Sequence record: PP886230.1
Direction: 5' to 3' (one strand)
Length of the DNA stretch: 64,000 bases
Part shown: positions 22,822 through 40,671 of the stretch, in pieces
Layout of the letters: each line of letters opens with the position of its first letter
How positions within the stretch are numbered: position 1 is the stretch's first letter
Notes under the pieces: model-generated
The model's input: the letters and a program-made list of their open reading frames with translations, nothing else
What the model was told of the DNA's origin: nothing
The model's database searches: none
Made by a program: the position numbers and the translations under genes

Positions 22822-23189
22822 TGGAAATTGCTCTTATTATCTTAACTGCTATGCTGTTTATTAGTACTGTGGTTATAATTGGTAAATTCTTTTGTGTATC
22901 ATTTTTAGAAACGGTATACGATGAAATTGCTGATGATTATGAATTACAAGCCGGATTTTTCATTACGTATTGGCTTAGTTTATTTTGTCTAGTCATTGCT
23001 TGGATTTTACATATCTTTAAATGGGGTATGGTAGACGGTGATCCTATTATGGCAATTATTGTTCTAGTGTTTGGTATCCTTGGTGGTGCAGTGCATAATC
23101 TAATGGTTATCTGGCAAACTGTTCAATATGTTTTGGTTCCCTATTTCGAAAAGATGCACAGTACAATTAAAAAACGTAAACGAGGTTAG
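22821..23189 (+). CDS. 3-TM membrane protein family, copy 8
   Basis: IGKFF after TM1; C-term KKRKRG as in copy 7. Confidence 0.7.
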   Translation: MEIALIILTAMLFISTVVIIGKFFCVSFLETVYDEIADDYELQAGFFITYWLSLFCLVIAWILHIFKWGMVDGDPIMAIIVLVFGILGGAVHNLMVIWQTVQYVLVPYFEKMHSTIKKRKRG

Positions 23190-23190
23190 T

Positions 23191-23553
23191 ATGAATGGGA
23201 TAGAATTATCTTTCGTTGGTCAATTACTAGTAATGGCGTATACATTTATCTTCTCACTGAATGCATTCGTGTGCATTGGGAAGTACTTCCATAAGCGACC
23301 ATTATCAAATATATATGATGTAATCCAAAAGAGATATAGTCCAGCATATACTGTGTTGGGTACAGTATTCAATTTTGGTTTTATTGTATTAATAATTGGA
23401 CTGTTCACATCCTCTTTGAATACAATAACCTTCGGTCTTATGATATGTTCATTGGTATTAGCCGTAATTATATGTTGTTTAGTACTGCACCTTGTGGTAC
23501 TATTATATATAAAGATCTCTGAAATCCACCAACGTTTGGGTATGAGGAAATAA
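23191..23553 (+). CDS. 3-TM membrane protein family, copy 9
   Basis: IGKYFHKRP...IY. Confidence 0.7.
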   Translation: MNGIELSFVGQLLVMAYTFIFSLNAFVCIGKYFHKRPLSNIYDVIQKRYSPAYTVLGTVFNFGFIVLIIGLFTSSLNTITFGLMICSLVLAVIICCLVLHLVVLLYIKISEIHQRLGMRK

Positions 23554-23554
23554 T

Positions 23555-23926
23555 ATGAGTTACCGTGAGATATTTTCCATTATTTCAATTATTATGTTCA
23601 GTACTGGAACACTGGCATGGTTATTATACTTCTTCTGTATTAATCCAGTGTATAATATGTTATGTAATATTAAATCAAGTGCCGGATATATCACTTTTAT
23701 GGTCTTTATGGGATATTATTGTCTAAGCATTTTAGGTGTTGTTTTGGTTGTTATATTTGATGTGGGACCAAATAGTGATGGTATGGAAATACATGAATTA
23801 ATAACCATGTTTGGATGTATGATACCAACAGCACTACTGTTTGTAGCTACTGGTAGTGGATTGATAAAATTATATAATTATTTAAAATCCATTCATAATT
23901 CCATTCATAATAAGCGTATGTCATAA
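23555..23926 (+). CDS. 3-TM membrane protein family, copy 10
   Basis: LYFF..NPVY; three helices. Confidence 0.7.
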   Translation: MSYREIFSIISIIMFSTGTLAWLLYFFCINPVYNMLCNIKSSAGYITFMVFMGYYCLSILGVVLVVIFDVGPNSDGMEIHELITMFGCMIPTALLFVATGSGLIKLYNYLKSIHNSIHNKRMS

Positions 23927-23967
23927 TAAAAATCCAGTACTTGATAGTACTGGATTAATAAGGAGTT

Positions 23968-24630
23968 ATGATGAAAACAAAATTAGGTTTGTTTTATAAA
24001 AATTATTTCGTTAAACAGCGTAAATTTATAAAAAAATATTTCTCTGGTGAGAAGTCTAGTCCTATAATTTTTAAAAGACCAAGTTATAATACTTACTTAG
24101 CGGGTGCTAAACAGTCTAAGAAATTTATTACTCTTTTAAATAAAAACAAAATTAAAGCTTCTTATGTTGAAACGAGAAGAAACTCATCAATAACTCCTGG
24201 TGATTTTATTGAGTACGGATGTTTCAATATTAAGTATAATGATAATACATACTTTATGGATATTGATTGTAATACATCCAATCTTTTTAACATTGTAGTA
24301 AATCCATTAAAACAATATAATGTTTATGGTGATGCTATTATCAAATTAATCAAAAACAAAGATGGCTTTGATTTTGAAATAAATGTTTTAGATGATAATT
24401 TTGACGAAGTACCCGTAAACCCTGAAATCTGTGATATTTTAAACAGTTTAAAAGGTAGTACCTACAATATATCATCTGATTTAATGTTTCAGTACTCATT
24501 AATCCATAAAGATATTGAAAAGTATATTGAATGTTCCAAAATTTTGAATTATCTTTACGATGAATTTAAAAAGAGTTCTAAAATAACCGCATACACTTTG
24601 TACAATATTCCTAAAATGGTGAATCTTTGA
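23968..24630 (+). CDS. Hypothetical protein
   Basis: GGAG RBS; preceded by the hairpin CCAGTACT-TGAT-AGTACTGG. Confidence 0.7.
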   Translation: MMKTKLGLFYKNYFVKQRKFIKKYFSGEKSSPIIFKRPSYNTYLAGAKQSKKFITLLNKNKIKASYVETRRNSSITPGDFIEYGCFNIKYNDNTYFMDIDCNTSNLFNIVVNPLKQYNVYGDAIIKLIKNKDGFDFEINVLDDNFDEVPVNPEICDILNSLKGSTYNISSDLMFQYSLIHKDIEKYIECSKILNYLYDEFKKSSKITAYTLYNIPKMVNL

Positions 24631-25763
24631 CAAATACAGTACTGGCAACTCCACCGTCTGTAATATATTGTCCAGTACTGTAAATTTGTATACCATCGGT
24701 TAAGTAAGTTCTGTATAAAGTTGCTGTAACATATACGTTATTCATATTCATCTCTATTGGTAGTACACATTTGGTATAGGCCGACACATCTGTTTGTGTA
24801 CCTATACCCAATTGACCTGCGTTATCGCCTGTGTTATAACCAGTTGCGTAAACACCTAATGAAGTTATAATATGATTAGAAAAATATGAATAACCCACAC
24901 TGCTTCTTATTATATCACCTGGTGCTTGTGTTGTTTGTCTTAACGAAATATATGTTTGTGATGTAGAACCATTTGCTAACTGACCAAAGTATTGTCCACC
25001 ACCATGATATGCAAATAATTTATTAGTACTATTATTACTTGCTATAGCAAAAGCGAAGTAACTTGAGTTTGTTGTATAATCTTTCACCGTATAGGTATTA
25101 GTTATTTGAGAACATAACGTGTACTTTGAATATAACGTCATGTCGGTTGTACCTACGCCTGATATTGCACCAGTATAATACAATCTCCCATCGGTTCCAA
25201 TAAATCCTTGCATAAGAAAATTTGCCAGTATTTTGGATGGTGTTACTCCAGTAGGTACTGTTCCTTGTACAAATGATGAAAGTGAATCGGTACTTCTACC
25301 ATTTCCCAGTTGTCCATAACTACCATAACCCGTATTCCATATCGTGTTGTCTGTACATAATACGCTTAATGCACCTGCACTAACTGCAATTTGTTTTATT
25401 GTTTTTCCAAGTGCTGTTATTCTATCAAACACTATCTTTGCAGAAGCCCACGTTGTTGACTTATCAGTTGATAAACCGAATGATGCACCATTTCCAGCAT
25501 ACCACATCGTATTATCTTTCTTTTTAATTAATGTTGACTCATACCCGAACCCATAGATCTTCTACGTTTGTATTGCACAAAACCCATTTGGTTTGTGTTA
25601 TAATATTACCTATACCCATTTGCCCAAACTCTTGAGAGCCTCTACTGTACAACGTACCATCTGACATAAGGGCAAAAACTGTTGTATCAGATGAAGCTAT
25701 TTTTGTTACAGAAGGTTGTATGTTCTTTTTTGATGATGTGATAATTCTTCCAAAGGGTAGCAT
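24611..25763 (-). pseudogene. RCC1/BLIP-II-like propeller paralog 12, frameshifted by one extra base at 25547
   Basis: Starts MLPFGRI. Deleting G25547 reads DLWVGYESTL and gives 383 aa. Confidence 0.75.
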
Positions 25764-25835
25764 TGTATCCTCCAAATGTAAATCGTTATTATATTTAGGA
25801 CAAAAAAATGCCAGTACAAGGCACTGGCATAAAAT

Positions 25836-27005
25836 CTAAGCAGAAGGCATATCCTTCATTTTAATAAATGAAAATTGTGTACCAGTATTTGTGGTTTGAT
25901 CAGTAAAATATGAATTACTACCAGCCCAGTACAATTCATTATTAACTATACAATATATAACAGAACTCGAACTCTGTGAATACACACGACTTATATTTGA
26001 TGGTTCCACTCCAGTACTGAACTGAACCGAACCCAACTGTGAACTTGGTATCACATCAGTTGGTCTACCTAAACCATTAACACCAGCCCCACCACCACAT
26101 GTATATACCCCAGTACTATCAGTTGATATATTAACATAACCATTTCCGGCATTTTCAAATAGTATTTCACTGGGAACAACACCAAATCCTGTAAGATCTA
26201 TTTTCCTGAATGTAGTGTAAACAGTAGAACCACCAACACCTCTTCCACCATAATCATTAGAACCAGCCATATAGATACTATATCCAGAACTTCCTAAACA
26301 TAATAACTGTACGTTGTCATATAATATTTGCATAGATATAACGTTATCAGGAATACTCAATACCGTAAAAGTAGTTAAAGAAGAACTTCCAATATTACTA
26401 CCAACCGATGTTCCACATCTGTAGTACTTACCGCCTTTTATATAATGGAACGATGAACCGCCTAACTTATGTGCTCCTATTGCACTTACCCCAGTATCTA
26501 TAAGAATGGGAGATACAACTTTGTTATTAACACCTAACTCAGATCTACTGTTCATACCGAACCCATATAAACGACCATCTAACATCAATATTAGTGTACT
26601 ACCGGAAGTACCCGCTGACGTAAATTCTATATTCTTTATTTGCGACACGTCAATACCTACAAATAATGAAGTTACTTCAGTCCAGTTAACATATGAACCA
26701 CTAGCCCCAAAATATCCACCCATGTATAGACCTGCACAATATAACTTATTATCAACAGTCTTTATTAATGTACCGGATACACACGCCCAAAAATCATCAA
26801 CTTCATAGGGTACATGTACCCAACCACCTAATACATCACTAGCATCCCCTGTACCTAATTTATAGTTCGAACCAGAACCACGCATGTACATATTCCCTGT
26901 ACTATAAAGTAATCCGACATGTAATTGACTACCATCCAATTTCTTTATTTCAGGAAGAGTTGGTTTAATATTTCCGTACTTTAACATTCTTCCAAAAGGT
27001 AACAT
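25836..27005 (-). CDS. RCC1/BLIP-II-like beta-propeller paralog 11
   Basis: MLPFGRMLKYGN leader; G.N..GxLG repeats. Confidence 0.85.
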   Translation of the reverse strand: MLPFGRMLKYGNIKPTLPEIKKLDGSQLHVGLLYSTGNMYMRGSGSNYKLGTGDASDVLGGWVHVPYEVDDFWACVSGTLIKTVDNKLYCAGLYMGGYFGASGSYVNWTEVTSLFVGIDVSQIKNIEFTSAGTSGSTLILMLDGRLYGFGMNSRSELGVNNKVVSPILIDTGVSAIGAHKLGGSSFHYIKGGKYYRCGTSVGSNIGSSSLTTFTVLSIPDNVISMQILYDNVQLLCLGSSGYSIYMAGSNDYGGRGVGGSTVYTTFRKIDLTGFGVVPSEILFENAGNGYVNISTDSTGVYTCGGGAGVNGLGRPTDVIPSSQLGSVQFSTGVEPSNISRVYSQSSSSVIYCIVNNELYWAGSNSYFTDQTTNTGTQFSFIKMKDMPSA

Positions 27006-27013
27006 ATTCCCTC

Positions 27014-28189
27014 CTATTCTGGTAAAATCATTTTCTTCATTTTAACTTGTTGTGTACCCGGACTCTGTTCCTGAAACATAGACCCATTACCACACCAGTA
27101 CACCTCATTAGTCCCCACTAACGCGTATAACACACCAGAACCACCTTGTACTGCAAATGCATTAACATCTGGAGCAATATCCATATCCTCATATTGTACT
27201 TGGTGGTAAGAAGATCTTTCTGATGCACTAGAAGGAGGCCAACCCAGAGGAACACCACTACCACATGTATAAAGTTTACCATTCTGTGTCATTGCCATTA
27301 TAAAATAATTCAAACTGTGGTTATTCATCGAAGCAGCATCTGGTATAATCCCACTAATTGCGGGAGTAGCACTAAATGGACTCATGATAATCGTAGTGTC
27401 TCCATACCCTATTCCTAAACAATAATCAGTGTTTTTTCCAGCCGTATATACTGTAATATTACCATTATTCGATGTAAGTACTGAAGTCGTTTCAGTAGTA
27501 CATGAAATACCAATAACTGTTCCTGATATATCAGTACTTACTGTAAATGTGGATAGTTTAGATGAACTTGTACCTAGGTTATAACTTGCATTATTACCAC
27601 ATCTGTAATATTGTCCATTTTTTACAAAATGGAAAGCACCACCCGACTGTGTTCCTGCGATTAAAGTAACACCCGTGTTAATCAAAATAGGTGTTGATTG
27701 TATTCCAGTAACACCCAATTCACCCCCAGCATTACGGCCTATCCCATATAAGTTACCATCACTTAACAGAATTAATAAAGAACCATTAAATGCGGTAGTT
27801 TCGGTAGAAGCTATATCTTGAACTGTAGTAAGGCTTGGAATTGTAGACAATATAGATGTAATATTAGTCCATCCAGGAACAGGTGATGCAGATACACCGA
27901 GATAGTTCATTTGCCCTGCTAAGTAAAATTCTCCGTCAGTCGTAAGTATAATTGTCCCTGCGAATAAACACCAAACATTAGAAACTTTATATGGACAAAG
28001 TACCCACCCATTTTGTACATACTCAGTACTATTATTTCCTAGCATATAATATGCACCACGCCCACGTAGATATAAGTTACCACTATCAAATAACATACCC
28101 ATATGTGTTACAGATGTACTAATCTTTAATACACCCGAAGGTGCAGGTTTAATATTCCCATACTTAACCATTCTTGCAAAAGGTAACAT
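27014..28189 (-). CDS. RCC1/BLIP-II-like beta-propeller paralog 10
   Basis: MLPFARMVKYGN; GRNAGGELG. Confidence 0.85.
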   Translation of the reverse strand: MLPFARMVKYGNIKPAPSGVLKISTSVTHMGMLFDSGNLYLRGRGAYYMLGNNSTEYVQNGWVLCPYKVSNVWCLFAGTIILTTDGEFYLAGQMNYLGVSASPVPGWTNITSILSTIPSLTTVQDIASTETTAFNGSLLILLSDGNLYGIGRNAGGELGVTGIQSTPILINTGVTLIAGTQSGGAFHFVKNGQYYRCGNNASYNLGTSSSKLSTFTVSTDISGTVIGISCTTETTSVLTSNNGNITVYTAGKNTDYCLGIGYGDTTIIMSPFSATPAISGIIPDAASMNNHSLNYFIMAMTQNGKLYTCGSGVPLGWPPSSASERSSYHQVQYEDMDIAPDVNAFAVQGGSGVLYALVGTNEVYWCGNGSMFQEQSPGTQQVKMKKMILPE

Positions 28190-28260
28190 ACTTCCCTCCT
28201 TTATTCATTATACTATATTTAATCAAAAAGAAATGCCAGTACTCAAGTACTGGCATTATT
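28153..28260 (-). repeat. ~107-bp cassette repeat: terminator GCCAGTAC-N-GTACTGGC + T tract, TATTAAATATAGTATAAT promoter, GGAGG RBS and first 12 codons
   Basis: Intergenic copies 28190-28260, 29404-29474, 30213-30283, 31475-31545, 32695-32765, 33906-33975, 36297-36367, 37547-37615; variant at 25764-25835; lengths 69-72 bp. Confidence 0.92.
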
Positions 28261-29403
28261 TCAATAAACATCCCAAGGTAATGGGGTCTTCCTAAATCCA
28301 TACCTGGTTGTGCTCGCACCATCTCCAGCAATGTATCGACCGATGCCACATTGGTATAACTCTGTACTACTACATATAGCACCACCAATAGTACCACTAC
28401 CCCACTGAATTATATTAGAATATGTTATTGGTAAATCACTACATTTAGTATATACACCAACGGTAGCAGCACCACTAATACCACCAAACATGCTTCGGTT
28501 AGCACCAGTGTAATATATACCATCTGGACTCATAAATGCAGAGGTGTACGTTGTACTACAATCCACTGGACTTCTTATAGTATTAAGATCGCCAGGGTAT
28601 GTTCTAGCAGCATATACGTAAACATTACCATCAGTAGTAATACCATTACCCAACTGACCACTGTTCTGACCACCACACGTAACTAACGATGCAGAACCAG
28701 AAACAATTGCAGTAGCATTATACGAAGTACCCATTGCAATAGAAGCACCAGACAATAGTTTTGGTGTAACGATAGCTGTTGTATTACCCTGGCCTAATTC
28801 ACCATTTGTGTTTCGTCCCCATGCGTATATAGAAGTCGTATCCAATCGACATAGTACTGAACCATAACTAAACGTATATCGCATGTCATTTACAGCAGAA
28901 GGCAAATTAACCTTAGTTGCAACACTAATAACACCACCAGTAACACCACTGTTTGCGTTCATGTTACGACCATATGCATATAAAGAACCATCTGAAGTTT
29001 TAATATGCATCATACCATCTGTGCAATATAATGCATCGATGCTATCCACCGCAACCGGACCCATACTGGCAGTTATATCGGTCCATCCAAGAGTAGTAGT
29101 ACTAGAAATTAAGTTATTTCCTGCGTAAAGGATTCTATTATTATTAGTAACTACCACTGTATATCTAGCAGTAACTCCAATTAATCGAACATCAGTATAT
29201 ATCTTAGACCACGCACCTAGTGAATTGGTATTTGCATCCAAAAAGCCTAACTGCCCATCTGTATTGTATCCAATACCCCATGCATCACCTGCACTGTCCA
29301 ATAACACTTCATGTGAAAAGCCAATCTTAAAATCTTTTATTGTAGGAACTACCGGAACTGGTGCAATATTCCCGTACTTAACCATTCTTCCAAAAGGTAA
29401 CAT
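28261..29403 (-). CDS. RCC1/BLIP-II-like beta-propeller paralog 9
   Basis: MLPFGRMVKYGN; GYNTDGQLG, GRNTNGELG. Confidence 0.85.
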   Translation of the reverse strand: MLPFGRMVKYGNIAPVPVVPTIKDFKIGFSHEVLLDSAGDAWGIGYNTDGQLGFLDANTNSLGAWSKIYTDVRLIGVTARYTVVVTNNNRILYAGNNLISSTTTLGWTDITASMGPVAVDSIDALYCTDGMMHIKTSDGSLYAYGRNMNANSGVTGGVISVATKVNLPSAVNDMRYTFSYGSVLCRLDTTSIYAWGRNTNGELGQGNTTAIVTPKLLSGASIAMGTSYNATAIVSGSASLVTCGGQNSGQLGNGITTDGNVYVYAARTYPGDLNTIRSPVDCSTTYTSAFMSPDGIYYTGANRSMFGGISGAATVGVYTKCSDLPITYSNIIQWGSGTIGGAICSSTELYQCGIGRYIAGDGASTTRYGFRKTPLPWDVY

Positions 29404-29474
29404 AATTCCCTCCTTATTCATTATACTATATTTAATACAAATAAGAAAGCCAGTATCAAGTACTGGCCTATATT

Positions 29475-30212
29475 TTAGACTGAATTGTTAGGATAATATC
29501 TCCCACGTCCCCATATTATTCGCACAGCACCACCACCAGCAGCCGTATAAGAAAAATTATCCCATATACTACCACCACCACCATACATCTTACCAGCACC
29601 ACCACTACCAGCACCACCATTATATGAACCATCGTATCTACCGCCAATACCATTAGCACCTTGAACAATGATACCAGTACCACCACCCGTACCAATGAAC
29701 GAGGTATTATAGAATGCACCACCACCACCGCCGCCGCCAGCACCATTTTCACCAGTGATTGCATCTCCGTTACCACCTTTACCAGTGTAGCCACCAGCAC
29801 CACCACCAATGACTGCACCACCACTTACACCAGCGTTGCCCCCATTACCACCACCATCATTAATAGCGTTAGCAGCTTTCCCACCTAGTCCACCAACCCT
29901 ATATTCACCAGTGAAGCTAACACATAGTTTTTCAGTTCCACGATATAAACCGTTTTCAACTGCTGTAGTAGTGTTGGGATGTGTAAGAGAAACACTTAAG
30001 TACTCACCACCAGAAACCGGAATATTATTACGCCACGATAAGCCGCCACCAGCACCACGTTGACCACCCGGCGAAATAACACATACTGATATTTCGGTAA
30101 CGCCAGCAGGAACTGTAAATTGTGTTGTTCCTATTGTCGTGATTAATTGTTCACCATGTGGCTTATATTCAATTTTATTCCCGTACTTAACCATTCTTCC
30201 AAAAGGTAACAT
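29475..30212 (-). CDS. Glycine-rich fibre/adhesin-like protein carrying the same MLPF leader (paralog 8)
   Basis: MLPFGRMVKYGN then FTVPAGVTEISVCVISPGG and GGGGG runs typical of phage Gly-rich domains. Confidence 0.8.
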   Translation of the reverse strand: MLPFGRMVKYGNKIEYKPHGEQLITTIGTTQFTVPAGVTEISVCVISPGGQRGAGGGLSWRNNIPVSGGEYLSVSLTHPNTTTAVENGLYRGTEKLCVSFTGEYRVGGLGGKAANAINDGGGNGGNAGVSGGAVIGGGAGGYTGKGGNGDAITGENGAGGGGGGGAFYNTSFIGTGGGTGIIVQGANGIGGRYDGSYNGGAGSGGAGKMYGGGGSIWDNFSYTAAGGGAVRIIWGRGRYYPNNSV

Positions 30213-30283
30213 ACTTCCTCCTTTATTCATTATACTATATTTAATACAAATAAGAAAGCCAGTACAAAGTACTGGCTAAATTA

Positions 30284-31474
30284 TTACAATTGTCTAGGTG
30301 TATCCAGAACATATCTATTTGTACTAGGACCACCATCATCATACGTTCCGGTTGAATATATATTTTTCATATCAGCAGTTAGAAAAGTACGATACGAACC
30401 GCGATATATTTTTATTTTATCATACATAGAATATGATATTTCTGCTGGCATTGGACATATAGTAAATCTACCAATAGTAACATTAGAACCAACACCCAAC
30501 GAACCAGCATAACTACTCGCATTTAAACCAGTTGCATATACACCAGTACTCGTAACTAGTATACTAGATTGTGTTGGGTATCCTGTATGAATTGAATACA
30601 AAGTTCCAGTTGGTAATGTCGTACTATTGCTCCCTAATACAGCAATTGCCGAACTGGTTGTGGTATTGTTACCCCATGCACCATTACTCGCTAAACCACC
30701 AACTAGAAACTGACGTGCACCAGTACTTGGATTCTCAACCAAAGCACTGACTGCACCACTTGAGCATCCAGTGTATTGTAACGTTTTTGTGTATGTTGTA
30801 CTTGGTTTATATAAAGTATATTCATTAAATGGTGTCCATGTGGTACTGGTACTTATACCTGACGTACCACCACCAATATATAAATTATTTTGTGTATCAA
30901 AAAACATTACACAGTTATTTGTTGACAGTATTTGTGCAATATCAACATTAGGCGTGACAGCTTTTACAAATGATCCATCTGTTATTTGTTGAGTACTACC
31001 AGTACCATCAGCGAATTGTCTAGCCCCACTCCAACCAGTACTCCATATTGTATTATTATCCATTAATACCGTAAACCACGTAGTACCTCCATACATCTGT
31101 TTAATTGAAGTACTTGAACTTTGCGTGTACAAATTTTCAATATATTGGTTATAACTTAAAAACGTAGTAGTACTAGTTGGTAAACCAACATGATCACCAT
31201 ATCCACAATAAAAATAATTTGAGTCATTATCTTTTACTAATAAAGTTCCTTGTGTAACCCAGCAATCGTTAACGTTTTCTCTAATTAATGTCCATGATTT
31301 TAATGCAGTGTTGTTTCCCCTACCAAATTTCCCAAAACTATTATTCCCACGTGCATATAGTTGACCATCCGTATACAGAACAACAACATCTAAATCAGTT
31401 GGGATTATTTTCTTAATTTGAAGTGGTACTGGGGCAATATTCCCATAATTCATCATTCTTGCAAAAGGTAACAT
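30284..31474 (-). CDS. RCC1/BLIP-II-like beta-propeller paralog 7
   Basis: MLPFARMMNYGN; GNNSFGKFG. Confidence 0.85.
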   Translation of the reverse strand: MLPFARMMNYGNIAPVPLQIKKIIPTDLDVVVLYTDGQLYARGNNSFGKFGRGNNTALKSWTLIRENVNDCWVTQGTLLVKDNDSNYFYCGYGDHVGLPTSTTTFLSYNQYIENLYTQSSSTSIKQMYGGTTWFTVLMDNNTIWSTGWSGARQFADGTGSTQQITDGSFVKAVTPNVDIAQILSTNNCVMFFDTQNNLYIGGGTSGISTSTTWTPFNEYTLYKPSTTYTKTLQYTGCSSGAVSALVENPSTGARQFLVGGLASNGAWGNNTTTSSAIAVLGSNSTTLPTGTLYSIHTGYPTQSSILVTSTGVYATGLNASSYAGSLGVGSNVTIGRFTICPMPAEISYSMYDKIKIYRGSYRTFLTADMKNIYSTGTYDDGGPSTNRYVLDTPRQL

Positions 31475-31545
31475 AAATTCCTCCTTTATTCATTATACTA
31501 TATTTAATACAAATAAGAAAGCCAGTACAGTGTACTGGCATTAAA

Positions 31546-32694
31546 TCATTGTATAAATGACATATCAACTTCTGTATAACTAAGAATGTTTTGTCCAGCA
31601 ATTCCCCCCATTACTACCATAGCATACCCACAATAATATAATTTCTCAGTGTCCGTAAGTATAAGTGAACCAGATGGAGTGCGTACCAAATTACACGAAC
31701 TATTAAACGAAGTATACGAAGGAGTATATGAGTACTGATTAATATTATTACCAACACCTAATTGACCAAATCCATTCGACCCAGATGCGTATAGAACTTC
31801 ATCACCTTTAGCTATATGTGATGCCATGTTACTAACACACGTATATAGAGTATAAACTCCCGAACTCAATAATGTCGGAGTTTTGTATTGTATATCGGTG
31901 GATGAAGAAGTACCACCTGTGCCAAATTCGTTCCCGTATTGTGCACCGAACTGTTTACCACAAGCGTACAAATTATTATCCGATTTAATAAAAAATGTAC
32001 TTTGATAACTTACATCAAAATCTATAACATCCGAAGAAATCATCGTCACCCCAGTAATAGAAGTTTGATTACCTGTACCTAACTGATAGTAATAGTTAAA
32101 ACCACAACCCCATAAAGTATTATCTTCTTTTAGGTATATGTTACCAACTGCCTTTTTAACCGAAGTTATAGTATCTACCCTTTTGAATGTGTTAAAAGAA
32201 TTAATGTTTGTACCATCACCAAATGATGATAGGTTCGAGTTATTGTTAACTCCACAACAATACAACGTACCATCGTTTGTTATCAAATTCACCTTCATAT
32301 CATTAAAACTACTCATGTATTTTATATCAGAAACATTAATACCACCTGATGTTATCCACGTAGTACAGTCCGTCCACAAAGTTTTTGTATCAGTTACACC
32401 AGTGAATGCCTTCGTGTTACCCGTGATAAAAACTTTTCCAGTACCTTTCTCTTCATACAATTGACAACTACTACTGTTATCTTCCAATAGAACTCGTTTA
32501 ACATTCTCTGCACAAAGAATAAATTTACTCGATGCTACACCTGTTCCAGTACCCCAATTCGTCGCAGAAGATGCATACAACTTATTAGTATAAGTATCAT
32601 GGAGATACATAGAATCACTTGAATATATTTTAAAACGCCTATCCTTACCAGGGGCAATATTCCCATAATTCATCATTCTTGCAAAAGGTAACAT
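31546..32694 (-). CDS. RCC1/BLIP-II-like beta-propeller paralog 6
   Basis: MLPFARMMNYGN; GSNGFGQLGVG. Confidence 0.85.
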   Translation of the reverse strand: MLPFARMMNYGNIAPGKDRRFKIYSSDSMYLHDTYTNKLYASSATNWGTGTGVASSKFILCAENVKRVLLEDNSSSCQLYEEKGTGKVFITGNTKAFTGVTDTKTLWTDCTTWITSGGINVSDIKYMSSFNDMKVNLITNDGTLYCCGVNNNSNLSSFGDGTNINSFNTFKRVDTITSVKKAVGNIYLKEDNTLWGCGFNYYYQLGTGNQTSITGVTMISSDVIDFDVSYQSTFFIKSDNNLYACGKQFGAQYGNEFGTGGTSSSTDIQYKTPTLLSSGVYTLYTCVSNMASHIAKGDEVLYASGSNGFGQLGVGNNINQYSYTPSYTSFNSSCNLVRTPSGSLILTDTEKLYYCGYAMVVMGGIAGQNILSYTEVDMSFIQ

Positions 32695-32765
32695 ATTTCC
32701 CTCCTTTATTCATTATACTATATTTAATACAAATAAGAAAGCCAGTACAGTGTACTGGCATTATA

Positions 32766-33905
32766 TTATTTCCACGGTAGAAGTGAATCAGGAACCCTTG
32801 TTGGTACAGTAGTTGAAGACATTCCAGTAAGATTGGGTACACCACATGTGTATAAATTATTATATTCGTCAACTAACATCGTATAAGAATAGCTCTTACA
32901 AAAACTACTAAGATTACTACCTTCTAATGCAGTAAGATCCATTTCAGCGAATGATGTTATATACATATCAGTTGTACCAATACCACATTGACCATTTGAA
33001 TTAAGGCCACATGAAAATAACTTATTATTATTATTAATTATACAGGATGGTCCGGTAAGGTTTGTCCCAAGCTCACCCACCAACTCCACTTCTCCTTGGA
33101 ATGATAAATTTGGAATTAATGTACTCATTGGGGCTACTGACCTATTTCCTGTACCTGCTTGTCCATAGTCGTTAATAGATGCAACTTTAACATTACCATC
33201 ATTAAGAAATATATAAGAAGTTTCATTTGTATTGACTGCTTTAATTGCATTACTAATCGAAGTATCTTGTGTAAATGTGAGCAAGTTTTGTGTCGTCGTT
33301 CCTGATACAAACGTTCTACCTGCATACCAATATGAACCATCATTTAGTACTAATCCAGTACTATATATTGCACAACCAGCACTGATAACATTTTCTATTG
33401 TACTATAGGTGAATCGTGAAACGCTTGAAGTTGATCCATTCCCAAAAACACCACCAGTACCAGCACCACAGTAGAACCACTTTCCATTTTTTAAAAATAC
33501 ACGCATACACGAAGATATCACAACACTATCAATATCATCTGCACTGACACCGAAATCAGTAAAGTTCTGTGTTATATCAACCCAAACGCCGTTAGTGTTT
33601 GAAGATAGTATTGGAATAACAGTACGTCTACCAGTGTACCAAATAGTACCATCTTTCTTTATAGCAATTGTTCCTTGTACCCCACCCCAATATCGTGTAA
33701 CATTTGAGTTGACAAGAGTCCATTCAGTTGAAGAGTCCAATGAACCATTACCACTTTGTCCATATGCTGAAGAACCAAACCAATATAGATTGCCATTTGT
33801 GTGTAAATAAAATTTGGCATCAGCAGAACATTGTAACCTGTTTTTAGGTAGAATCAGTTCAGGTGCGATATTCCCGTACTTAACCATTCTTGCAAAAGGT
33901 AACAT
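32766..33905 (-). CDS. RCC1/BLIP-II-like beta-propeller paralog 5
   Basis: MLPFARMVKYGN; GLNSNGQCGIG; true start after GGAGG. Confidence 0.85.
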   Translation of the reverse strand: MLPFARMVKYGNIAPELILPKNRLQCSADAKFYLHTNGNLYWFGSSAYGQSGNGSLDSSTEWTLVNSNVTRYWGGVQGTIAIKKDGTIWYTGRRTVIPILSSNTNGVWVDITQNFTDFGVSADDIDSVVISSCMRVFLKNGKWFYCGAGTGGVFGNGSTSSVSRFTYSTIENVISAGCAIYSTGLVLNDGSYWYAGRTFVSGTTTQNLLTFTQDTSISNAIKAVNTNETSYIFLNDGNVKVASINDYGQAGTGNRSVAPMSTLIPNLSFQGEVELVGELGTNLTGPSCIINNNNKLFSCGLNSNGQCGIGTTDMYITSFAEMDLTALEGSNLSSFCKSYSYTMLVDEYNNLYTCGVPNLTGMSSTTVPTRVPDSLLPWK

Positions 33906-33975
33906 ATTCCCTCCTTTATTTGTTATACTATATTTAATACAAATAAGAAAGCCAGTACAGTGTACTGGCATTATG

Positions 33976-35085
33976 TTATTTTGGTAAATCAATTTTAGTA
34001 AAGACTGCAACATCCTCGATTGCACCTGGAATGGCGTAATACGATCCAGTACTATACACATCTCCATTTTTGGTTAATATCGATGTCAAACCATCACTAA
34101 AAAGAACATCCCTAATCTCACTAACTTCAACGGGTAATTGTAAATTGGTAGCACTATATATAGCACCAGTTTGAGAATTGTTTAATCCCAAACCACGGTT
34201 CGCCCCAACACCCTTCTGATATGTACTAGTAATTACCATTTGTGTAGCAGTATTTAAGGCAGGTGAATTCGTCATAAACAATGGAGAACTATTAGGCAAA
34301 GTACTTACAGGAACTGCACGGAATGTAGTCGTACCTGAACTAAGAAAGTTTGGAGTTTGACCACATACGAAATATGATGTACCATTATAGTAATTTAATG
34401 CATTACCACCAATGGCTGCATCGATTACACCAGAACTACGCAATCCCCAAGTGTTAATTTGTGTTTGGTTCCCCGTACCATGCTGCCCACTACTATTCCA
34501 TCCAGAACTATATAGCTTATTATCTAATGTAAGATACATACTATCATTCGCATTGGTCATTACTTTACGAACGTTCGTAGCACATTGAGTTAATGTGTAA
34601 ATTGATGAGGAACCAATACCCAAAGAACCACGATATCCATTATCTCCTGCACCATAGAGTACTGAATTAGTGCTAAGTACAAATATTAAACCATTTGTAC
34701 ATACAATATTAGCAATTTCACTTACTGGTATAGCATTGGTAAACCAATTAGTTCTTTCAACTAATACAGTACTGTAAGAAGTAGTTGTAGAAGATGAGAA
34801 CCAGTACGTTTGACCTGATGTCCATATCGTATTATCATTTTTAATAATAACAAGTGTACGATCACCCACGAAAAAATTAGAAACATCTGCACTTACTAAT
34901 GTCCACGAAGACACCGTGTTGGTATTACCATTTCCAGATTCACCACCTTGATTTCTACCTATGTAATATAAATCATGTGAATCAGTCAATAAGAATTGGC
35001 CTTGGGTAGAAGCACCAACTTTAATTATTTTTTTAGGACCAGGGACAATATTTCCATACCTAATCATTCTTCCAAAAGGTAACAT
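33976..35085 (-). CDS. RCC1/BLIP-II-like beta-propeller paralog 4
   Basis: MLPFGRMIRYGN; GWNSSGQHGTG. Confidence 0.85.
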   Translation of the reverse strand: MLPFGRMIRYGNIVPGPKKIIKVGASTQGQFLLTDSHDLYYIGRNQGGESGNGNTNTVSSWTLVSADVSNFFVGDRTLVIIKNDNTIWTSGQTYWFSSSTTTSYSTVLVERTNWFTNAIPVSEIANIVCTNGLIFVLSTNSVLYGAGDNGYRGSLGIGSSSIYTLTQCATNVRKVMTNANDSMYLTLDNKLYSSGWNSSGQHGTGNQTQINTWGLRSSGVIDAAIGGNALNYYNGTSYFVCGQTPNFLSSGTTTFRAVPVSTLPNSSPLFMTNSPALNTATQMVITSTYQKGVGANRGLGLNNSQTGAIYSATNLQLPVEVSEIRDVLFSDGLTSILTKNGDVYSTGSYYAIPGAIEDVAVFTKIDLPK

Positions 35086-35093
35086 ATTCCCTC

Positions 35094-36296
35094 CTATTGT
35101 TGCCATAACTGCGTTGGCATTAATGTTAGTGTAGTAATACTATAAGTGCCATCTGGCAATCTACCACCATTTCCATTCCAGCCACCACATGCATATAATT
35201 TATAATCTTTAGTAATTATTATGGTTCTGCTCCAATCTTTAGATGCCATAAGAACATTGTCATAACCACCACTTATTGCACTAAGATTAAAAATATTCCA
35301 AGTTCTAACTAATGTATTAGTTCCATTACCTTCTTGACCATATGAGTTAGCACCACTACTTCTAACATATGGTGCGTATTGTGCCATAGGTGCACCAATT
35401 GATGCATTTCCCATATTACTTGGACAAATAAAAGTACTGTACTTACTTACATCAACCGTGACCGATGTGTTCCTAATTGGTGTTAGCTGATTTACCGATG
35501 TAGTCGTACCATTACCAGCTTGTCCAGAACTGTTAGCCCCGCTATAATATACAGACCCACCAGTAGTAAACCACCAAGTAACATCGTATGTAGTACTAAT
35601 ATGTTCTACATTACTAATCACGAATTTGTTCAAATATACAACAGAACTACCACCACATCCACTTTCACCAAAGTTATCCTTACCACAAAACCATGCATCT
35701 TTATTTGATTTGATATAGTGCGTTCCTTGTAATGAACATGCCATATGTGTAACTTCACCCATATTAGTCATAACTGTGAGTGTAGGGATGGAATTTTTAT
35801 TCCCAGAGCCACATTCACCATTAGTATTTCTTCCACACGCAATTACTCTACCATCGGTTAATAATATTCTAGTACTTTCACCTATATATACACTCTTGAT
35901 CATATTAGCCATAACACCTATTTTATTAAATGCAACAGTAACATCAGTCCATGTTGTCAAATAACCATTAACAGGTGTTGCATCTCCATAATCAGAAAAT
36001 GCACCCACAGACCCAGTGTAGTATATTTTATTATCCAAATCAATCATCAATGAACCTTGAACACCAAGCCAAAAGGCTGCACAGTTCCTTGCAAGTACTG
36101 TAAATGACGAAACTGCTGCTGAATTCCCAAGACCAAATTGATAAAAGTTATTACTACCATAACCATATAAAGTATTAGTTGGGTTATGGAGATACATACA
36201 GTTTGTATAATGTTGTTGTAAAACATCTGAGAACTCTACAGGTTCTGGACCTGGTGCAATATTTGCGTACTTAACCATTCTTCCAAAAGGTAACAT
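35094..36296 (-). CDS. RCC1/BLIP-II-like beta-propeller paralog 3
   Basis: MLPFGRMVKYAN; GRNTNGECGSG. Confidence 0.85.
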   Translation of the reverse strand: MLPFGRMVKYANIAPGPEPVEFSDVLQQHYTNCMYLHNPTNTLYGYGSNNFYQFGLGNSAAVSSFTVLARNCAAFWLGVQGSLMIDLDNKIYYTGSVGAFSDYGDATPVNGYLTTWTDVTVAFNKIGVMANMIKSVYIGESTRILLTDGRVIACGRNTNGECGSGNKNSIPTLTVMTNMGEVTHMACSLQGTHYIKSNKDAWFCGKDNFGESGCGGSSVVYLNKFVISNVEHISTTYDVTWWFTTGGSVYYSGANSSGQAGNGTTTSVNQLTPIRNTSVTVDVSKYSTFICPSNMGNASIGAPMAQYAPYVRSSGANSYGQEGNGTNTLVRTWNIFNLSAISGGYDNVLMASKDWSRTIIITKDYKLYACGGWNGNGGRLPDGTYSITTLTLMPTQLWQQ

Positions 36297-36367
36297 ATTT
36301 CCCTCCTTTATTCATTATACTATATTTAATACAAAAAGAAATGCCAGTATCAAGTACTGGCATAATA

Positions 36368-37546
36368 TTATCGGTTAAATTTAAAATCTGTTATGTGTGT
36401 CCATGTATGATTTAATGGGGTACTCATTGGTGTAAAGCCAGCAGGGTCTGACAAAGCTGTACCACGTGCGTACATAAATTGATTGCCAGTACAATCCATT
36501 ATAGCATAAGAACGTGTTGCTGTGCCACATTTGAACCCAACTGCACTACTTGGGGTCGGTAATACTTCAAATGTAGGTGCATTTGAACTACCACCCCCAT
36601 CTTTTGTTCCAGCTATGTACAGAACTCCATTAGTATCAATGATTAAGTTAGTCCAATATGCTTGTTCTCGACCAGCATAAAAATATGTTAAATCACCGGG
36701 TACAAATGGTAACGTTCCTTTATATATTGTAGTATTAACATTCACTGGTGCACCAGCTACACCCCATGAACTCATATAGTTTCTCCCACTTGAGTAGAAT
36801 GTAGTTCCTTTACCGTAAAGTATTAATGTTGCTTGACTTGTTCGCATTGCATTATATTCAAACTCAGGATCATCAGTAGCGTCCTTAAAAATCTGTGTCC
36901 ATGTTGTTATATTACCAGTAGTCGTAACACCCATTTGATAATAATAATTATCACCAGTAGCATAGAATTCTTTAGGGCCAGTTTGTACAATTGCATTCCC
37001 ATTAGTTAACCAAAAATCTAATGTATTAGTCTTGATCTTGGTTGGTGTGTAATTCGCCACGGTATTTCCTTTTCCGAAATAACCATTAGCGTTATTTCCA
37101 TGACCCCATAAATCACCATTAGTTGTGCGTAGGAATAATGTACCAGTATTGAATCCAACTTTTTCTATAGTACTTATGTCAATACCAACAGTCGTGTACT
37201 TCGTTGTAAAATCTTGAAAAGTACTCCAATAATTAGATGAACCATTAAACATGGTTTGTCTACCAGTGTACTTCACTTTATTATCGTTAGTGATAAGTAA
37301 TGTCCCCCACACTGACGCGAACATTAACTTAACATTTTCCATAACAAAGTATGGCTTACCGTATGCTGACGCGGTAGTGTTTAAACCTAATAGTTGTCCA
37401 TCATTACTACAACCCCATACTTCGCCGTTATCCAAAAGCATCAACATAGTAGGTTTGCCGGATGATACATCCAAAAAGAAATCTTTTGGTGTTGGTACGC
37501 CCGGTGCTTCATTTCCATAATTCAACATTCTTCCAAAAGGTAACAT
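36368..37546 (-). CDS. RCC1/BLIP-II-like beta-propeller paralog 2
   Basis: MLPFGRMLNYGN; GNNANGYFGKG. Confidence 0.85.
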   Translation of the reverse strand: MLPFGRMLNYGNEAPGVPTPKDFFLDVSSGKPTMLMLLDNGEVWGCSNDGQLLGLNTTASAYGKPYFVMENVKLMFASVWGTLLITNDNKVKYTGRQTMFNGSSNYWSTFQDFTTKYTTVGIDISTIEKVGFNTGTLFLRTTNGDLWGHGNNANGYFGKGNTVANYTPTKIKTNTLDFWLTNGNAIVQTGPKEFYATGDNYYYQMGVTTTGNITTWTQIFKDATDDPEFEYNAMRTSQATLILYGKGTTFYSSGRNYMSSWGVAGAPVNVNTTIYKGTLPFVPGDLTYFYAGREQAYWTNLIIDTNGVLYIAGTKDGGGSSNAPTFEVLPTPSSAVGFKCGTATRSYAIMDCTGNQFMYARGTALSDPAGFTPMSTPLNHTWTHITDFKFNR

Positions 37547-37615
37547 AGTTCCTCCTTTATCATTATACTATATTTAATACAAATAAGAAAGCCAGTATCA
37601 AGTACTGGCATCGTA

Positions 37616-38725
37616 TTACTTGGGTAATGGAATTGTGGTCCATCTATTTGCGGCAACGTCACCTGGTACATATGTAGGACTACCACTTACAGCAATAGTT
37701 TCATTACCATCATATACAACACTGAAGTTTGTGCACGTATACAACGCTGCGGCATCTGGATTGTAATTTTCAAGTGTTAGTGTATTGGTGAACAAATTCA
37801 ATGCAGTAGTTGAGCCGTTTTTACCATATGCACCTGTAGTATATATCTTTCCTTCTGTTGTTGAGTACATATTAACATATGACCCAGATGATGATTTAGC
37901 AATTTTATCTATCTTGCTATCTATTGTTTTAGAGTTAAATTGAAATGGATATACCTGTACGTTAGTATCTAAACCATTTCCCAGTTCCCCATTTAACTGC
38001 CACCCTGTGTGGTACATTCCCGCATTTGTATATGCAAGCGTACTATACGCATTACCACCCATTATTTTAGTGCCAGATAATTTTAAACCAAACGATGTCC
38101 ACTTACCAGTTTCATTTCCTATGGAACCATAAGCACTTGTACCACACGCACGAAGCTCGCCATTTGACGTTAGAAGCACTGTATTATTAACGTTACCAAA
38201 TATATCAATAACCTGATTAGTGCCATTATTCAGTACTGAAGTAAAAGTACTCTGTGAGTAAGTACTACCTGAACCAACAGAACCATTTGTGTTCATACCT
38301 CTTCCATATACAATTTTACCATCAGCACTAACATAGTGCATTGAATCAAAACCAATGGATATCATTTTAATATCAGATATATCTGGAAATGAAGAAGTTA
38401 CATCTACTCCACCTAGTGGAATTGTATTATTTCCTAAACCTAATGAGACATTAGTTCCGTGCATTATAAATTTATCTTCTTTAAAATATAAAATATTATA
38501 TCCACCAGCCCATGCATTATTAACGCCATTTGTAATCAGTACCCATTTATTTTGTGTAGTAGTTCCAGTAATATTTAACTGTTGATAGTTATTGATTCCA
38601 CAACCATATAGCGATCCATCACCATATAGTACATATAAATTATCATATCCTGCAATAACTTTCTTTATTTTTTTGGGTACAGGTGCTACATTCCCATACT
38701 TTAACATTCTTCCAAAAGGTAACAT
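37616..38725 (-). CDS. RCC1/BLIP-II-like beta-propeller paralog 1
   Basis: MLPFGRMLKYGN; GWQLNGELGNG. Confidence 0.85.
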   Translation of the reverse strand: MLPFGRMLKYGNVAPVPKKIKKVIAGYDNLYVLYGDGSLYGCGINNYQQLNITGTTTQNKWVLITNGVNNAWAGGYNILYFKEDKFIMHGTNVSLGLGNNTIPLGGVDVTSSFPDISDIKMISIGFDSMHYVSADGKIVYGRGMNTNGSVGSGSTYSQSTFTSVLNNGTNQVIDIFGNVNNTVLLTSNGELRACGTSAYGSIGNETGKWTSFGLKLSGTKIMGGNAYSTLAYTNAGMYHTGWQLNGELGNGLDTNVQVYPFQFNSKTIDSKIDKIAKSSSGSYVNMYSTTEGKIYTTGAYGKNGSTTALNLFTNTLTLENYNPDAAALYTCTNFSVVYDGNETIAVSGSPTYVPGDVAANRWTTIPLPK

Positions 38726-38774
38726 TATTTTCTCCTTTATTCATTATATCATATTTACCTCCTAACGAAAACCC

Positions 38775-38803
38775 TTGACATTCTTTCAGTACTGGTGTAC
38801 TAT
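38775..38803 (+). promoter_or_regulatory. sigma70 promoter for the minigene array (TTGACA-17-TACTAT)
   Basis: Only clear promoter seen in 38.7-43.6 kb; divergent from the RCC1 array. Confidence 0.7.
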
Positions 38804-38828
38804 AGAAGGAATATAAGGAGAACTACAC

Positions 38829-39056
38829 ATGACAAATACTCTTAAGTACTACCTCAATACTCTAAATGAACTAGAGTACGGGGAATTTCTCGCGGATAGT
38901 TCGTGGCTAATTGAGCTAAAAAATTATAATAGTCCAGGATGCACCCTTATGATGAACAATGCAATTGATACCCTCATTGTGAGTATTTTACACAGCAACA
39001 TCTGCGGGGATAGCAATAAACAATTATCAAAAATCTTAGTACTGCTATCTATATGA
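38829..39056 (+). CDS. Minigene array unit 1
   Basis: KYY start, ILVLLSI end; most divergent unit. Confidence 0.65.
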   Translation: MTNTLKYYLNTLNELEYGEFLADSSWLIELKNYNSPGCTLMMNNAIDTLIVSILHSNICGDSNKQLSKILVLLSI

Positions 39057-39256
39057 ATATCGAACAGTACTACATCGATGCACTACCAACAAAAGGTCTA
39101 CGTGAAAGCCTACTGCATACACAAACTAATTTCAAACACCTCAAACGTAGCCCTAAACTCCTGAACTCGTACAGGAATAATAACATAAGAAATGCTTTAC
39201 AAGGGGTAGAATGTATGCAATACTATTACATCCTTACCCTATTAATCGAGTACTAA
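39053..39256 (+). CDS. Minigene array unit 2
   Basis: MNIEQYY...YYILTLLIEY. Confidence 0.8.
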   Translation: MNIEQYYIDALPTKGLRESLLHTQTNFKHLKRSPKLLNSYRNNNIRNALQGVECMQYYYILTLLIEY

Positions 39257-39257
39257 T

Positions 39258-39467
39258 ATGAATACTGAACATAAAGAATTCTACACCAAATACCTTAGCA
39301 ACGAAGAACAATTGTTTCTAAGGAGTGTATCACCTGTAAGTACCAATACTCAATTCGGTAGAGATTGCTTTAATAATTGTATACGTAGTACTCTAGAAGC
39401 AATCGAATGCAATAACAAAAATATTATGTACTCAGGTTTAATAGGACTAATATATTTCTATGAATAA
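39258..39467 (+). CDS. Minigene array unit 3
   Basis: MNTEHKEFY...FNNCI; close paralog of unit 18. Confidence 0.8.
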   Translation: MNTEHKEFYTKYLSNEEQLFLRSVSPVSTNTQFGRDCFNNCIRSTLEAIECNNKNIMYSGLIGLIYFYE

Positions 39468-39654
39468 TCATAAAGATTTCTATTGTAGTAAACTACCCAA
39501 ACAAGAACAGCTATCATTCTCTTTAGCACCACCTATGAGAAAGGATAATCTGTATTATAATTACGATTTCAGGATGGTGACACGTTATGCAATAGAACAT
39601 CAGTTCCCTGAAACTAAGTACCGCTCTATCCTGAACCTCATCTTTAAGTTCTAA
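39460..39654 (+). CDS. Minigene array unit 4
   Basis: MNNHKDFY...YRSILNLIFKF. Confidence 0.8.
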   Translation: MNNHKDFYCSKLPKQEQLSFSLAPPMRKDNLYYNYDFRMVTRYAIEHQFPETKYRSILNLIFKF

Positions 39655-39706
39655 AAGGTACACCAGGGACCGAGTACTTTAATATAGTAAGGCTAATTAC
39701 ATTATA
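39655..39706 (+). pseudogene. Deleted minigene remnant
   Basis: Retains only the family C-terminus TEYFNIVRLITL-stop. Confidence 0.5.
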
Positions 39707-39892
39707 ATGAATCATATAAGCTACTACTACCAACAACTATCCGACAGAGACAAGTACAGTCACAACTCCCATGTGTGGTACTACAAACGCGGCAGTATAA
39801 GAGACAAACAACATTACTTCTGTATTTCTATTAAAGAAGCACTGACAACTAAGTACACGTACCGAGCAGTACTTAAACTTATTGAAATGTAA
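39707..39892 (+). CDS. Minigene array unit 5
   Basis: YRAVLKLIEM end. Confidence 0.8.
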   Translation: MNHISYYYQQLSDRDKYSHNSHVWYYKRGSIRDKQHYFCISIKEALTTKYTYRAVLKLIEM

Positions 39893-39902
39893 AGAGAATA
39901 CT

Positions 39903-40085: not shown

Positions 40086-40093
40086 GGTAATAT

Positions 40094-40279: not shown

Positions 40280-40287
40280 GGTACTCT

Positions 40288-40467: not shown

Positions 40468-40474
40468 GGTAGAC

Positions 40475-40663: not shown

Positions 40664-40671
40664 GGAATACT

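Follow-up and report, generated by a model that had tools for sequence, protein, structure and literature searches.

A shuffled gene array in jumbo phage vB_EcoM_E9.1 probably encodes virion-associated binding heads behind a common leader peptide

Here we describe an array of twelve minus-strand genes, termed cassettes A to L, in Escherichia phage vB_EcoM_E9.1 (hereafter E9.1). The stretch of DNA that we analysed (the window) comprises 64,000 nucleotides (nt) and is the final 64 kb of the 367,851-bp record PP886230.1. The whole array, including the promoter box of cassette A, occupies positions 24611–38760 and is 100% identical to that record, as is all of 24000–39500 (record positions 327851–343351). 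The nearest group to E9.1 is that of the 121Q/PBECO4/phAPEC6 jumbo myoviruses, several of which are assigned to Asteriusvirus in the GenBank classification. GenBank labels the array genes “regulator of chromosome condensation”, and about 40 sequenced genomes of jumbo coliphages, Salmonella phages and Klebsiella phages carry this label or “DNA condensation proteins”. The evidence points instead to shuffled virion-associated binding heads. Comparison of the E9.1 array with those of nine relatives showed that a repeated unit with its coding leader (~110–120 nt in all) is, as judged from the DNA, the site at which cassettes are gained, lost, replaced and moved between related phages. On balance, we think it probable that the array is a shuffled library of binding heads that are displayed on the virion and have one docking peptide in common.

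Cassette order and breakpoints among relatives

We compared the locus in E9.1 and the nine relatives after clustering the cassette bodies at ≥80% nucleotide identity. The ten genomes yielded 42 cassette types in ten different orders. The E9.1 order is A B C D E F G H I J K L. SP27 reads B C D E F G H I J M N K O, SHEFM2K reads A B C D E F G P I M K L, and phAPEC6 reads Y Q D C R G H I J M N K O. The orders are F Q D E G H Z I J M N L in 121Q, C D E F G P I S T L in PBECO4, A C D E G H I J M K L in ELP22, and F D S G R H I ah ai M K T O in JP4; Turkey3 and EJP2 contain largely other cassette types. The ten arrays differed by whole-cassette gains and losses, same-slot replacements, and translocations. 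Cassette F stands at array position 1 in 121Q, JP4 and Turkey3, C–D has become D–C in phAPEC6, and B is penultimate in EJP2.

The breakpoints coincided with the cassette starts. When E9.1 was compared with seven relatives by megablast, all block ends fell at −76 to +45 of a cassette start codon, with one exception, an internal deletion converting L into O. Counting all ordered genome pairs, 460 of 516 synteny-block ends (89%) lay within −85 to +50 nt of a cassette start, against 11% expected; ordered pairs are not independent, but the effect is very large. The crossovers were located in the unit or in the coding leader. Adjacent blocks also differed in identity (99.0, 99.8, 93.7 and 99.5% between E9.1 and ELP22), giving a patchy range of 93–99.8% that switched at the units. 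Synonymous divergence (dS) between cassettes of the same type reached ~0.5 despite array flanks that were 93–99.6% identical, which indicates that cassettes have been exchanged with diverged donors. An earlier, first-pass annotation of this DNA had proposed that recombination between the repeats moves whole genes. The order changes and the breakpoints in the unit and leader bear this out, and the array, far from being collinear and invariant, has ten orders in ten genomes, with 89% of block ends at cassette starts. Recombination at the repeats thus appears to move cassettes, a conclusion that we hold with high confidence.

The repeat unit

The intergenic spacers of the array measure 69–72 nt, except for two 8-nt junctions. 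In order, the unit consists of a hairpin (GCCAGTAC-loop-GTACTGGC), a T-run, ATTAAATATAGTATAAT and then AAAGGAGG. The hairpin has an 8–11-bp GC-rich stem on an AGTAC/GTACT core, with folding energies of −16.8 to −19.4 kcal/mol (z −2.8 to −4.0 against shuffled sequences). Across relatives the stems are kept and the loops vary freely; the 5′ arms GCCAGTAC, GCTAGTAC, GTCAGTAC and GACAGTAC come with matching 3′ arms, that is, with paired changes. Sequence records holding the unit number 42. Within the 64-kb window it is confined to the array: its hairpin pattern gave nine matches against none expected, and TAAATA-N3-TATAAT gave 13 against four expected, nine of the 13 lying inside the array.

In total, the array contains eight full units, one degenerate unit, one promoter-only copy and two short junctions, all on the minus strand, so that nine of the 11 junctions have a predicted hairpin and T-run followed by a promoter-like box and GGAGG. 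Full units precede B (37547–37615; hairpin, T-run, ATTAAATATAGTATAAT and Shine–Dalgarno sequence), C (36297–36367), E (33906–33975), F (32695–32765), G (31475–31545), H (30213–30283), I (29404–29474) and J (28190–28260); unit and leader before G are 96% identical over 120 nt to the copy before F. The degenerate unit before L (25764–25835) retains its hairpin, and its promoter box is reduced to CCTAAATATAAT. Cassette A has a promoter box (GGTAAATATGATATAAT) and a Shine–Dalgarno sequence at 38726–38760, in the divergent intergenic region, and a leader; the upstream hairpin is absent. Both short junctions, C/D (35086–35093) and J/K (27006–27013), read TAG-GAGGGAAT-ATG. The first-pass description of a 69–72-bp unit before every gene is therefore right about the spacer lengths and needs amending for A, which has no hairpin, and for L, whose unit and leader are degenerate. 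The same annotation had noticed that two junctions lack the unit, as they do, both being 8 nt long and of one sequence. Its suggestion that C–D and J–K are two-gene cassettes did not survive comparison with relatives: the pairs are divisible, with D found without C, K without J, and breakpoints at −10 to −13 of the start codon.

A TTGACA-like −35 element is absent from the array units, the best candidate being CTGGC[AT]. The array boxes are ATTAAATA or GGTAAATA (in EJP2, TGTAAATA), followed by TATAAT, and from these xxTAAATA boxes we infer that the array cassettes are expressed late. Elsewhere in the window, TATAAATA, which we take to be the T4 late-promoter consensus, occurs only at 9742 and 10391 (plus strand), each time ≤50 nt upstream of a gene annotated as virion structural protein (9786–10169 and 10439–11692, respectively), a placement that fits T4-type late promoters in E9.1. 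AGTAC/GTACT-rich inverted repeats also stand beside other promoters (23934–23953, 38780–38800, 21430–21470 and 45470–45550) and may represent either a terminator type in common use or the binding site of a regulator.

The leader peptide

Eleven of the 12 genes open with an identical 21 nt, ATG TTA CCT TTT G[GC]A AGA ATG; the twelfth, cassette L, opens with a diverged copy, ATG CTA CCC TTT GGA AGA ATT. The array proteins accordingly begin M-L-P-F-[GA]-R-M-x-x-Y-G-N. Over the first 14 codons, the leaders are 79% identical in amino acids (aa) and 85% in nucleotides, and copies of the 72-nt unit are 84% identical. The bodies are ~20% identical between cassettes as proteins and 39% as DNA, with the neighbours J and K at 34%. 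Where two cassettes share a residue, they share its codon in 85% of leader comparisons versus 45.5% of body comparisons, in agreement with the first-pass remark that synonymous positions are shared in the leader while the bodies have diverged.

The motif M-[LI]-P-F-x-R-[MI]-x-x-Y-G-N is retained across genera despite synonymous changes. Proline in the leader is encoded by CCT in 116 of 126 E. coli-phage cassettes; Klebsiella phage fENko-Kae01 and Salmonella phage 7t3 together use CCA or CCG in 22 of 23. Since the motif is kept while the proline codons are lineage-specific, the leader peptide seems to be under selection and its DNA to be homogenised within lineages. A constraint on the nucleotides only (a translation start or RNA operator) was rejected as the sole cause of leader conservation, because the peptide is kept with other codons across genera. 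The EJP2 units form a type apart, with another loop, GTAAATACATTATAAT, and another Shine–Dalgarno context, even before the bodies B, D and F that EJP2 shares with E9.1, and Turkey3 contains both unit types. By these sequence criteria, units and leaders are in concerted evolution.

The same leader is joined to unrelated bodies, namely RCC1, Kelch, glycine-rich (Gly-rich) and phrog_6011 virion structural proteins. In Turkey3 and EJP2 it precedes Kelch propellers, in fENko-Kae01 a PF21722 glycine-rich protein, and in 7t3 a member of the PHROG family named “virion structural protein”. Glycine-rich homologues of cassette H in other phages begin with MLELL or MIELL, not MLPF. In two unrelated and otherwise confident AlphaFold models (cassettes I and H), leader residues 1–19 had predicted local distance difference test (pLDDT) values below 60–70 and lay outside the fold. 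We had considered the leader as a velcro strand closing the propeller and discarded this idea, as residues 1–19 lie outside the propeller and the leader is also found on non-propeller bodies. A scan of IMG/VR for the leader returned only 121Q itself and one chance match.

Selection on the bodies was assessed gene-wide in cassettes of the same type. The ratio of nonsynonymous to synonymous divergence (dN/dS) had a median of 0.16 and never exceeded 1, which showed the bodies to be kept by purifying selection, to the extent that such rates reveal it. Diversifying selection on the bodies was rejected on the same figures, the test being gene-wide and not site-level.

Folds of the cassette bodies

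A scan of the window for open reading frames (ORFs) delimited the twelve genes, running on the minus strand from 38725 down to 24611. RCC1-like propellers are encoded by cassettes A (37616–38725, 369 aa), B (36368–37546, 392 aa), C (35094–36296, 400 aa, its TAG stop abutting the Shine–Dalgarno sequence of D), D (33976–35085, 369 aa, behind one short junction), E (32766–33905, 379 aa), F (31546–32694, 382 aa), G (30284–31474, 396 aa), I (28261–29403, 380 aa), J (27014–28189, 391 aa), K (25836–27005, 389 aa, behind the other short junction) and L (24611–25763). [quoted passage not shown] The array had been described as 12 paralogous genes; this holds for the 11 RCC1-like bodies and not for that of H, which has an unrelated, glycine-rich fold.

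RCC1 repeat profiles (Pfam PF00415, PF13540 and PF25390) matched 11 of the 12 bodies. Several single-repeat matches passed the gathering score, and the whole-domain profile PF25390 scored below its 150-bit cut-off. The AlphaFold model of cassette I is a seven-bladed beta-propeller (pLDDT 89.3, predicted template modelling score 0.87). Its best structural match was UVR8 (template modelling score 0.77), with RPGR and RCC1 at 0.65–0.68. In a viral structure library, the fold was also present in proteins named tail fibre from Pseudomonas phages Littlefix and PollyC.

The body of cassette H gave no RCC1 signal in the profile search, and its AlphaFold model (pLDDT 92.7) matched residues 77–277 of gp24, the tail fibre of cyanophage Pam3 (7ypx_A), with a Z score of 13.2 over 159 residues and a root-mean-square deviation of 3.0. 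The matched part comprises the TNF-like sandwich and the glycine-rich lattice domains. The next matches were the glycine-rich domain of ALK (Z 7.8) and others at ≤4.4. Searching the PDB with a sequence profile of H gave no match, so that Pam3 gp24 was found by structure comparison only; through its homologues, H belongs to the Gly-rich family PF21722. In Pam3 gp24, these two domains are described as serving host-receptor recognition, whereas attachment of the fibre to the baseplate is the task of a distinct helix at the N-terminus (PMC9608196). Thus, H shares TNF-like and glycine-rich receptor-recognition domains with the glycine-rich adhesin heads of Pam3 gp24 and S16 gp38 (PMC9608196) and has the 19-residue array leader where Pam3 gp24 has an N-terminal alpha-helical domain for trimerisation and baseplate docking. 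We identified no chaperone gene adjacent to H. Two 219-aa ORFs on either flank of the region (23971–24630 and 40862–41521) were examined as paralogous chaperones and dismissed, as they are mutually unrelated and belong to no informative family.

Cassette L is frameshifted near 25540 and is annotated as two coding sequences in GenBank. The frameshift is identical in E9.1, 121Q, SHEFM2K and ELP22, and PBECO4 has the same break with a few nearby substitutions; downstream of it, a frame of 298 codons is still open. SP27, phAPEC6 and JP4 instead have an internal deletion in L (L+140 to L+858). Cassette L, the last of the array, would be an old pseudogene or else a gene translated through frameshifting.

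Virion association

The array of phAPEC6 corresponds to gp001–gp010 plus genes at the other end of its circularly written record. Mass spectrometry of phAPEC6 virions detected gp003, 005, 006, 007, 009, 010, 549 and 551 (PMC7247149); all eight proteins are array members, gp007 being a truncated cassette. For ENKO_525c, detection by liquid chromatography–tandem mass spectrometry is noted in GenBank. The papers on 121Q and phAPEC6 also describe an inner body, hexons that are each decorated at the centre, and unassigned hair-like fibres on both capsid and sheath (PMC5646251, PMC7247149). We are fairly confident that the array proteins are virion-associated.

Neighbouring features

Divergently from the array, a sigma-70-like promoter at 38775–38803 marks the start of a plus-strand tandem array of some twenty paralogous ORFs of ~60 aa (~39460–43620; two repeat families), the copy number of which varies among relatives according to annotation tables. 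On its other side, the RCC1 array is bordered by seven back-to-back plus-strand ORFs of 104–123 aa (21487–23926). Some of these share one PHROG in a relative's annotation, making another row of small paralogs. Upstream of the array, HNH/homing-endonuclease genes of differing length, or none, occupy the same slot in different relatives (18620–19969 and 20002–20583 in E9.1), a second kind of local variability.

In fENko-Kae01, ~330 bp separate the array start from an annotated 19.7-kb direct terminal repeat. The greater length of the E9.1 record, 367,851 bp against ~348 kb, suggests that it includes the terminal repeat, and the array may therefore lie near the genome end.

Discussion

We propose that this array is a hyperplastic locus in which a 121Q-like jumbo phage keeps interchangeable virion-associated binding heads. 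Each cassette would comprise a terminator hairpin, a T4-late-like promoter box, a Shine–Dalgarno sequence, a ~15-residue leader and a variable body. The agent of exchange would likely be the general homologous recombination of the phage, and because the repeat extends into the reading frame, every crossover would leave an in-frame, expressed gene. The leader would act as a common docking peptide, fitting any head to one virion site, possibly the hair-like fibres or the hexon decoration seen on 121Q and phAPEC6. If the heads bind host-surface structures, as we suppose, cassette turnover would alter adsorption or host range. The adhesin role of the array proteins has, in our estimate, an even chance of being correct, and the docking role of the leader could go either way. 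More tentatively, display may be plug-and-play, in that the ~15-residue peptide would seat unrelated heads (RCC1, Kelch, Gly-rich and others) in one virion socket and particles would carry mixed, combinatorial adhesins, rewritten by recombination at the late-promoter/terminator/leader repeats.

Several points weigh against this proposal. The phAPEC6 array proteins were identified by 1–5 unique peptides each, and the same virion list holds a topoisomerase subunit, thymidylate synthase and a RecA-like protein (PMC7247149); since it includes such enzymes, the listing is no proof of a structural role. The case for docking by the leader consists of its modularity and its predicted disorder. Most propellers are monomeric, unlike trimeric fibre heads of the kind of Pam3 gp24, and H comes without the N-terminal trimerising and docking helix of Pam3 gp24. 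The promoter class and the terminator activity of the units are predictions, and the comparative pattern reports the outcomes of recombination, not its pathway.

The main rival to virion-displayed heads is that the array proteins are internal to the head (inner-body) or ejected, with the leader as a capsid-targeting signal and the library serving anti-defence or host takeover after injection, which we consider unlikely. T4-type internal-protein genes are polymorphic and have a common short N-terminal targeting peptide and promoter, and the low abundance at which array proteins are virion-associated would suit such a role, as would the inner body that 121Q and phAPEC6 possess (see above). This explanation sits poorly with cassette H, a receptor-recognition head of the fibre-tip type, and with the RCC1-like propellers in tail-fibre-named proteins of other phages. 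Moreover, the T4 prohead protease cleaves at (L/I)-x-E, and the leader has no such site: in the array and its relatives, the motif contains no conserved Glu, and the residues after Y-G-N are variable. Rather less likely still, the array proteins could be late non-structural inhibitors or decoys (for example, BLIP-II-like binders of host enzymes or defence proteins) that reach virions by carry-over. Propellers of the RCC1 class are indeed generic protein binders, and clearly non-structural enzymes are present in both the phAPEC6 virion list and the unpurified fENko-Kae01 preparation. Carry-over has to contend, however, with the detection of eight different array members, one of them truncated, with the resemblance of H to a fibre head, with a relative's cassette body that matches the PHROG family “virion structural protein”, and with a shared disordered N-terminal peptide that has no obvious role in soluble inhibitors. 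Of the first-pass suggestion “adhesins or inhibitors”, the adhesin or binding part has thus gained indirect support, from virion detection, the fibre-type head of H and the propellers named as tail fibres; a BLIP-II-like inhibitor has found no specific support.

Two further explanations seem to us very improbable. Ordinary tandem duplication and divergence, with repeats that are alike because of expression needs and have no part in rearrangement, has been invoked in published discussions of 121Q-like genomes (PMC5646251, PMC7247149), and the adjacency of J and K at 34% identity would fit it. It is already contradicted by ten different orders with breakpoints concentrated in the repeats, by the translocations (F; C–D to D–C; B in EJP2), by lineage-specific unit types replaced independently of the bodies, and by the homogenised synonymous sites of the leader. 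The most doubtful is the role stated by the GenBank label, that of DNA or chromosome condensation factors. The Pfam RCC1 repeats underlie it, and the phAPEC6 authors propose a role in ordering the packaged DNA (PMC7247149). The name derives from eukaryotic RCC1, the exchange factor for Ran, and a role with DNA does not follow from the fold by itself; in structure, the propeller comes closest to UVR8, with similarity to RCC1 at fold level only. To our knowledge, there is no Ran in bacteria. Given that the bodies are 20% identical and appear freely replaceable by Kelch and Gly-rich folds, “chromosome condensation” should not be taken as a function.

If the proposal of binding heads is right, the locus would be the main hypervariable determinant among otherwise 95–99% identical phages considered for therapy or biocontrol, and an obvious candidate behind their differences in adsorption and host range. 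A short universal docking peptide, if confirmed, would also offer an easy way to make a jumbo phage display proteins of choice. In the searchable literature, papers on phAPEC6, 121Q, fENko-Kae01, fEgEco12, Sharanji and UE-S1 do not describe the units, the leader or the shuffling; where they mention the RCC1 genes at all, it is as condensation proteins or a tandem array (including PMC5646251 and PMC7247149).

Comparison with known systems

Several known systems resemble parts of the array. Like integron arrays, it consists of ordered, exchangeable single-gene cassettes with a repeated recombination site and a content that varies among close relatives. By contrast with integrons, it has no attI or attC, the element between cassettes being a short GC-rich hairpin, T-run and promoter box; promoter-like boxes and terminators come with the individual cassettes, where integrons have a single common Pc, and the cassettes share a coding leader; and recombination appears homologous rather than site-specific, with crossovers also inside the coding leader. 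In the annotation, the 50 kb surrounding the array contain no integrase, only HNH/homing endonucleases, although no dedicated integrase profile search was run. The phrase “integrase-free integron” is thus an analogy only, there being no integrase, attC or common promoter. “Accordion”, the other first-pass comparison, fits no better. Poxvirus gene accordions change gene copy number through tandem-repeat recombination, whereas all ten arrays here lack near-identical duplicates (no cassette type occurs twice in any genome) and vary by replacement and translocation of diverged cassettes.

Multi-receptor-binding-protein loci include the tailspike/depolymerase sets of the Klebsiella jumbo phages PhiK64-1 and RaK2, and conserved N-terminal fibre domains are known from P22- and T7-type phages. 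The array likewise has tandem alternative binding modules, a conserved N-terminal anchor (a putative role here) and a distal part swapped by recombination. It differs in that the anchor is only ~15 residues long and predicted to be disordered rather than a folded domain, that the heads are propellers and not beta-helix depolymerases, and that a terminator–promoter unit flanks each gene. With the T4 internal-protein locus, the array has in common polymorphic genes, a short conserved N-terminal peptide, shared expression signals and virion products; unlike that locus, it has no protease cleavage motif after the leader, and its bodies look like binding heads of the external kind.

The nearest parallel comes from T4-type phages, in the form of their promoter/terminator cassette, the promoter-early stem-loop (PeSL), which gives the mechanism suggested in the first-pass annotation a documented forerunner. 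PeSLs are terminator/early-promoter composites of ~100 nt, of the sigma-70 type, that stand before ORFans; related T4-type phages differ there by indels and replacements attributed to homologous recombination, and excised mini-circles have been shown (Arbiol et al. 2010, PMC2839356; Comeau et al. 2014, PMC4122927). Like PeSLs, the array units combine a stem-loop terminator, a promoter and a Shine–Dalgarno sequence and are repeated through a hyperplastic region, each ORF carries its own predicted expression signals, and the indel and replacement breakpoints between relatives coincide with the motif (460 of 516 block ends). Unlike PeSLs, the array box is T4-late-like (xxTAAATA followed by TATAAT, a TTGACA −35 being absent) and the encoded proteins are found in virions, the repeat runs 36–45 nt into the ORF as a conserved coding leader, and the cassettes encode one class of large proteins with a shared N-terminus, not small unrelated ORFans.

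The window also contains 12 copies of a second motif, a stem-loop GGTTGAC-N3-GGTCAGCC, the 5′ arm of which holds a TTGAC −35 box, followed by a T-run and a TATAAT-like −10 (6935, 10178, 10361, 11703, 12764, 17051, 18333, 20591, 53233, 57271, 60262 and 62522). All are on the plus strand just upstream of plus-strand genes, never in the array. The motif matches the published PeSL architecture, in which a stem-loop overlaps the −35 box, and points to genuine PeSLs in the early regions of 121Q-like phages. As a separate PeSL-like early motif exists in the same genome, the array units would form a second class. Plug-and-play display, if true, would be a late-gene, in-frame counterpart of PeSL shuffling, so far undescribed. 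The array extends the PeSL idea, that of regulatory repeats as recombination hot spots, from early ORFans to what are probably late structural genes, and shows a design in which the repeat enters the reading frame and crossovers remain in frame.

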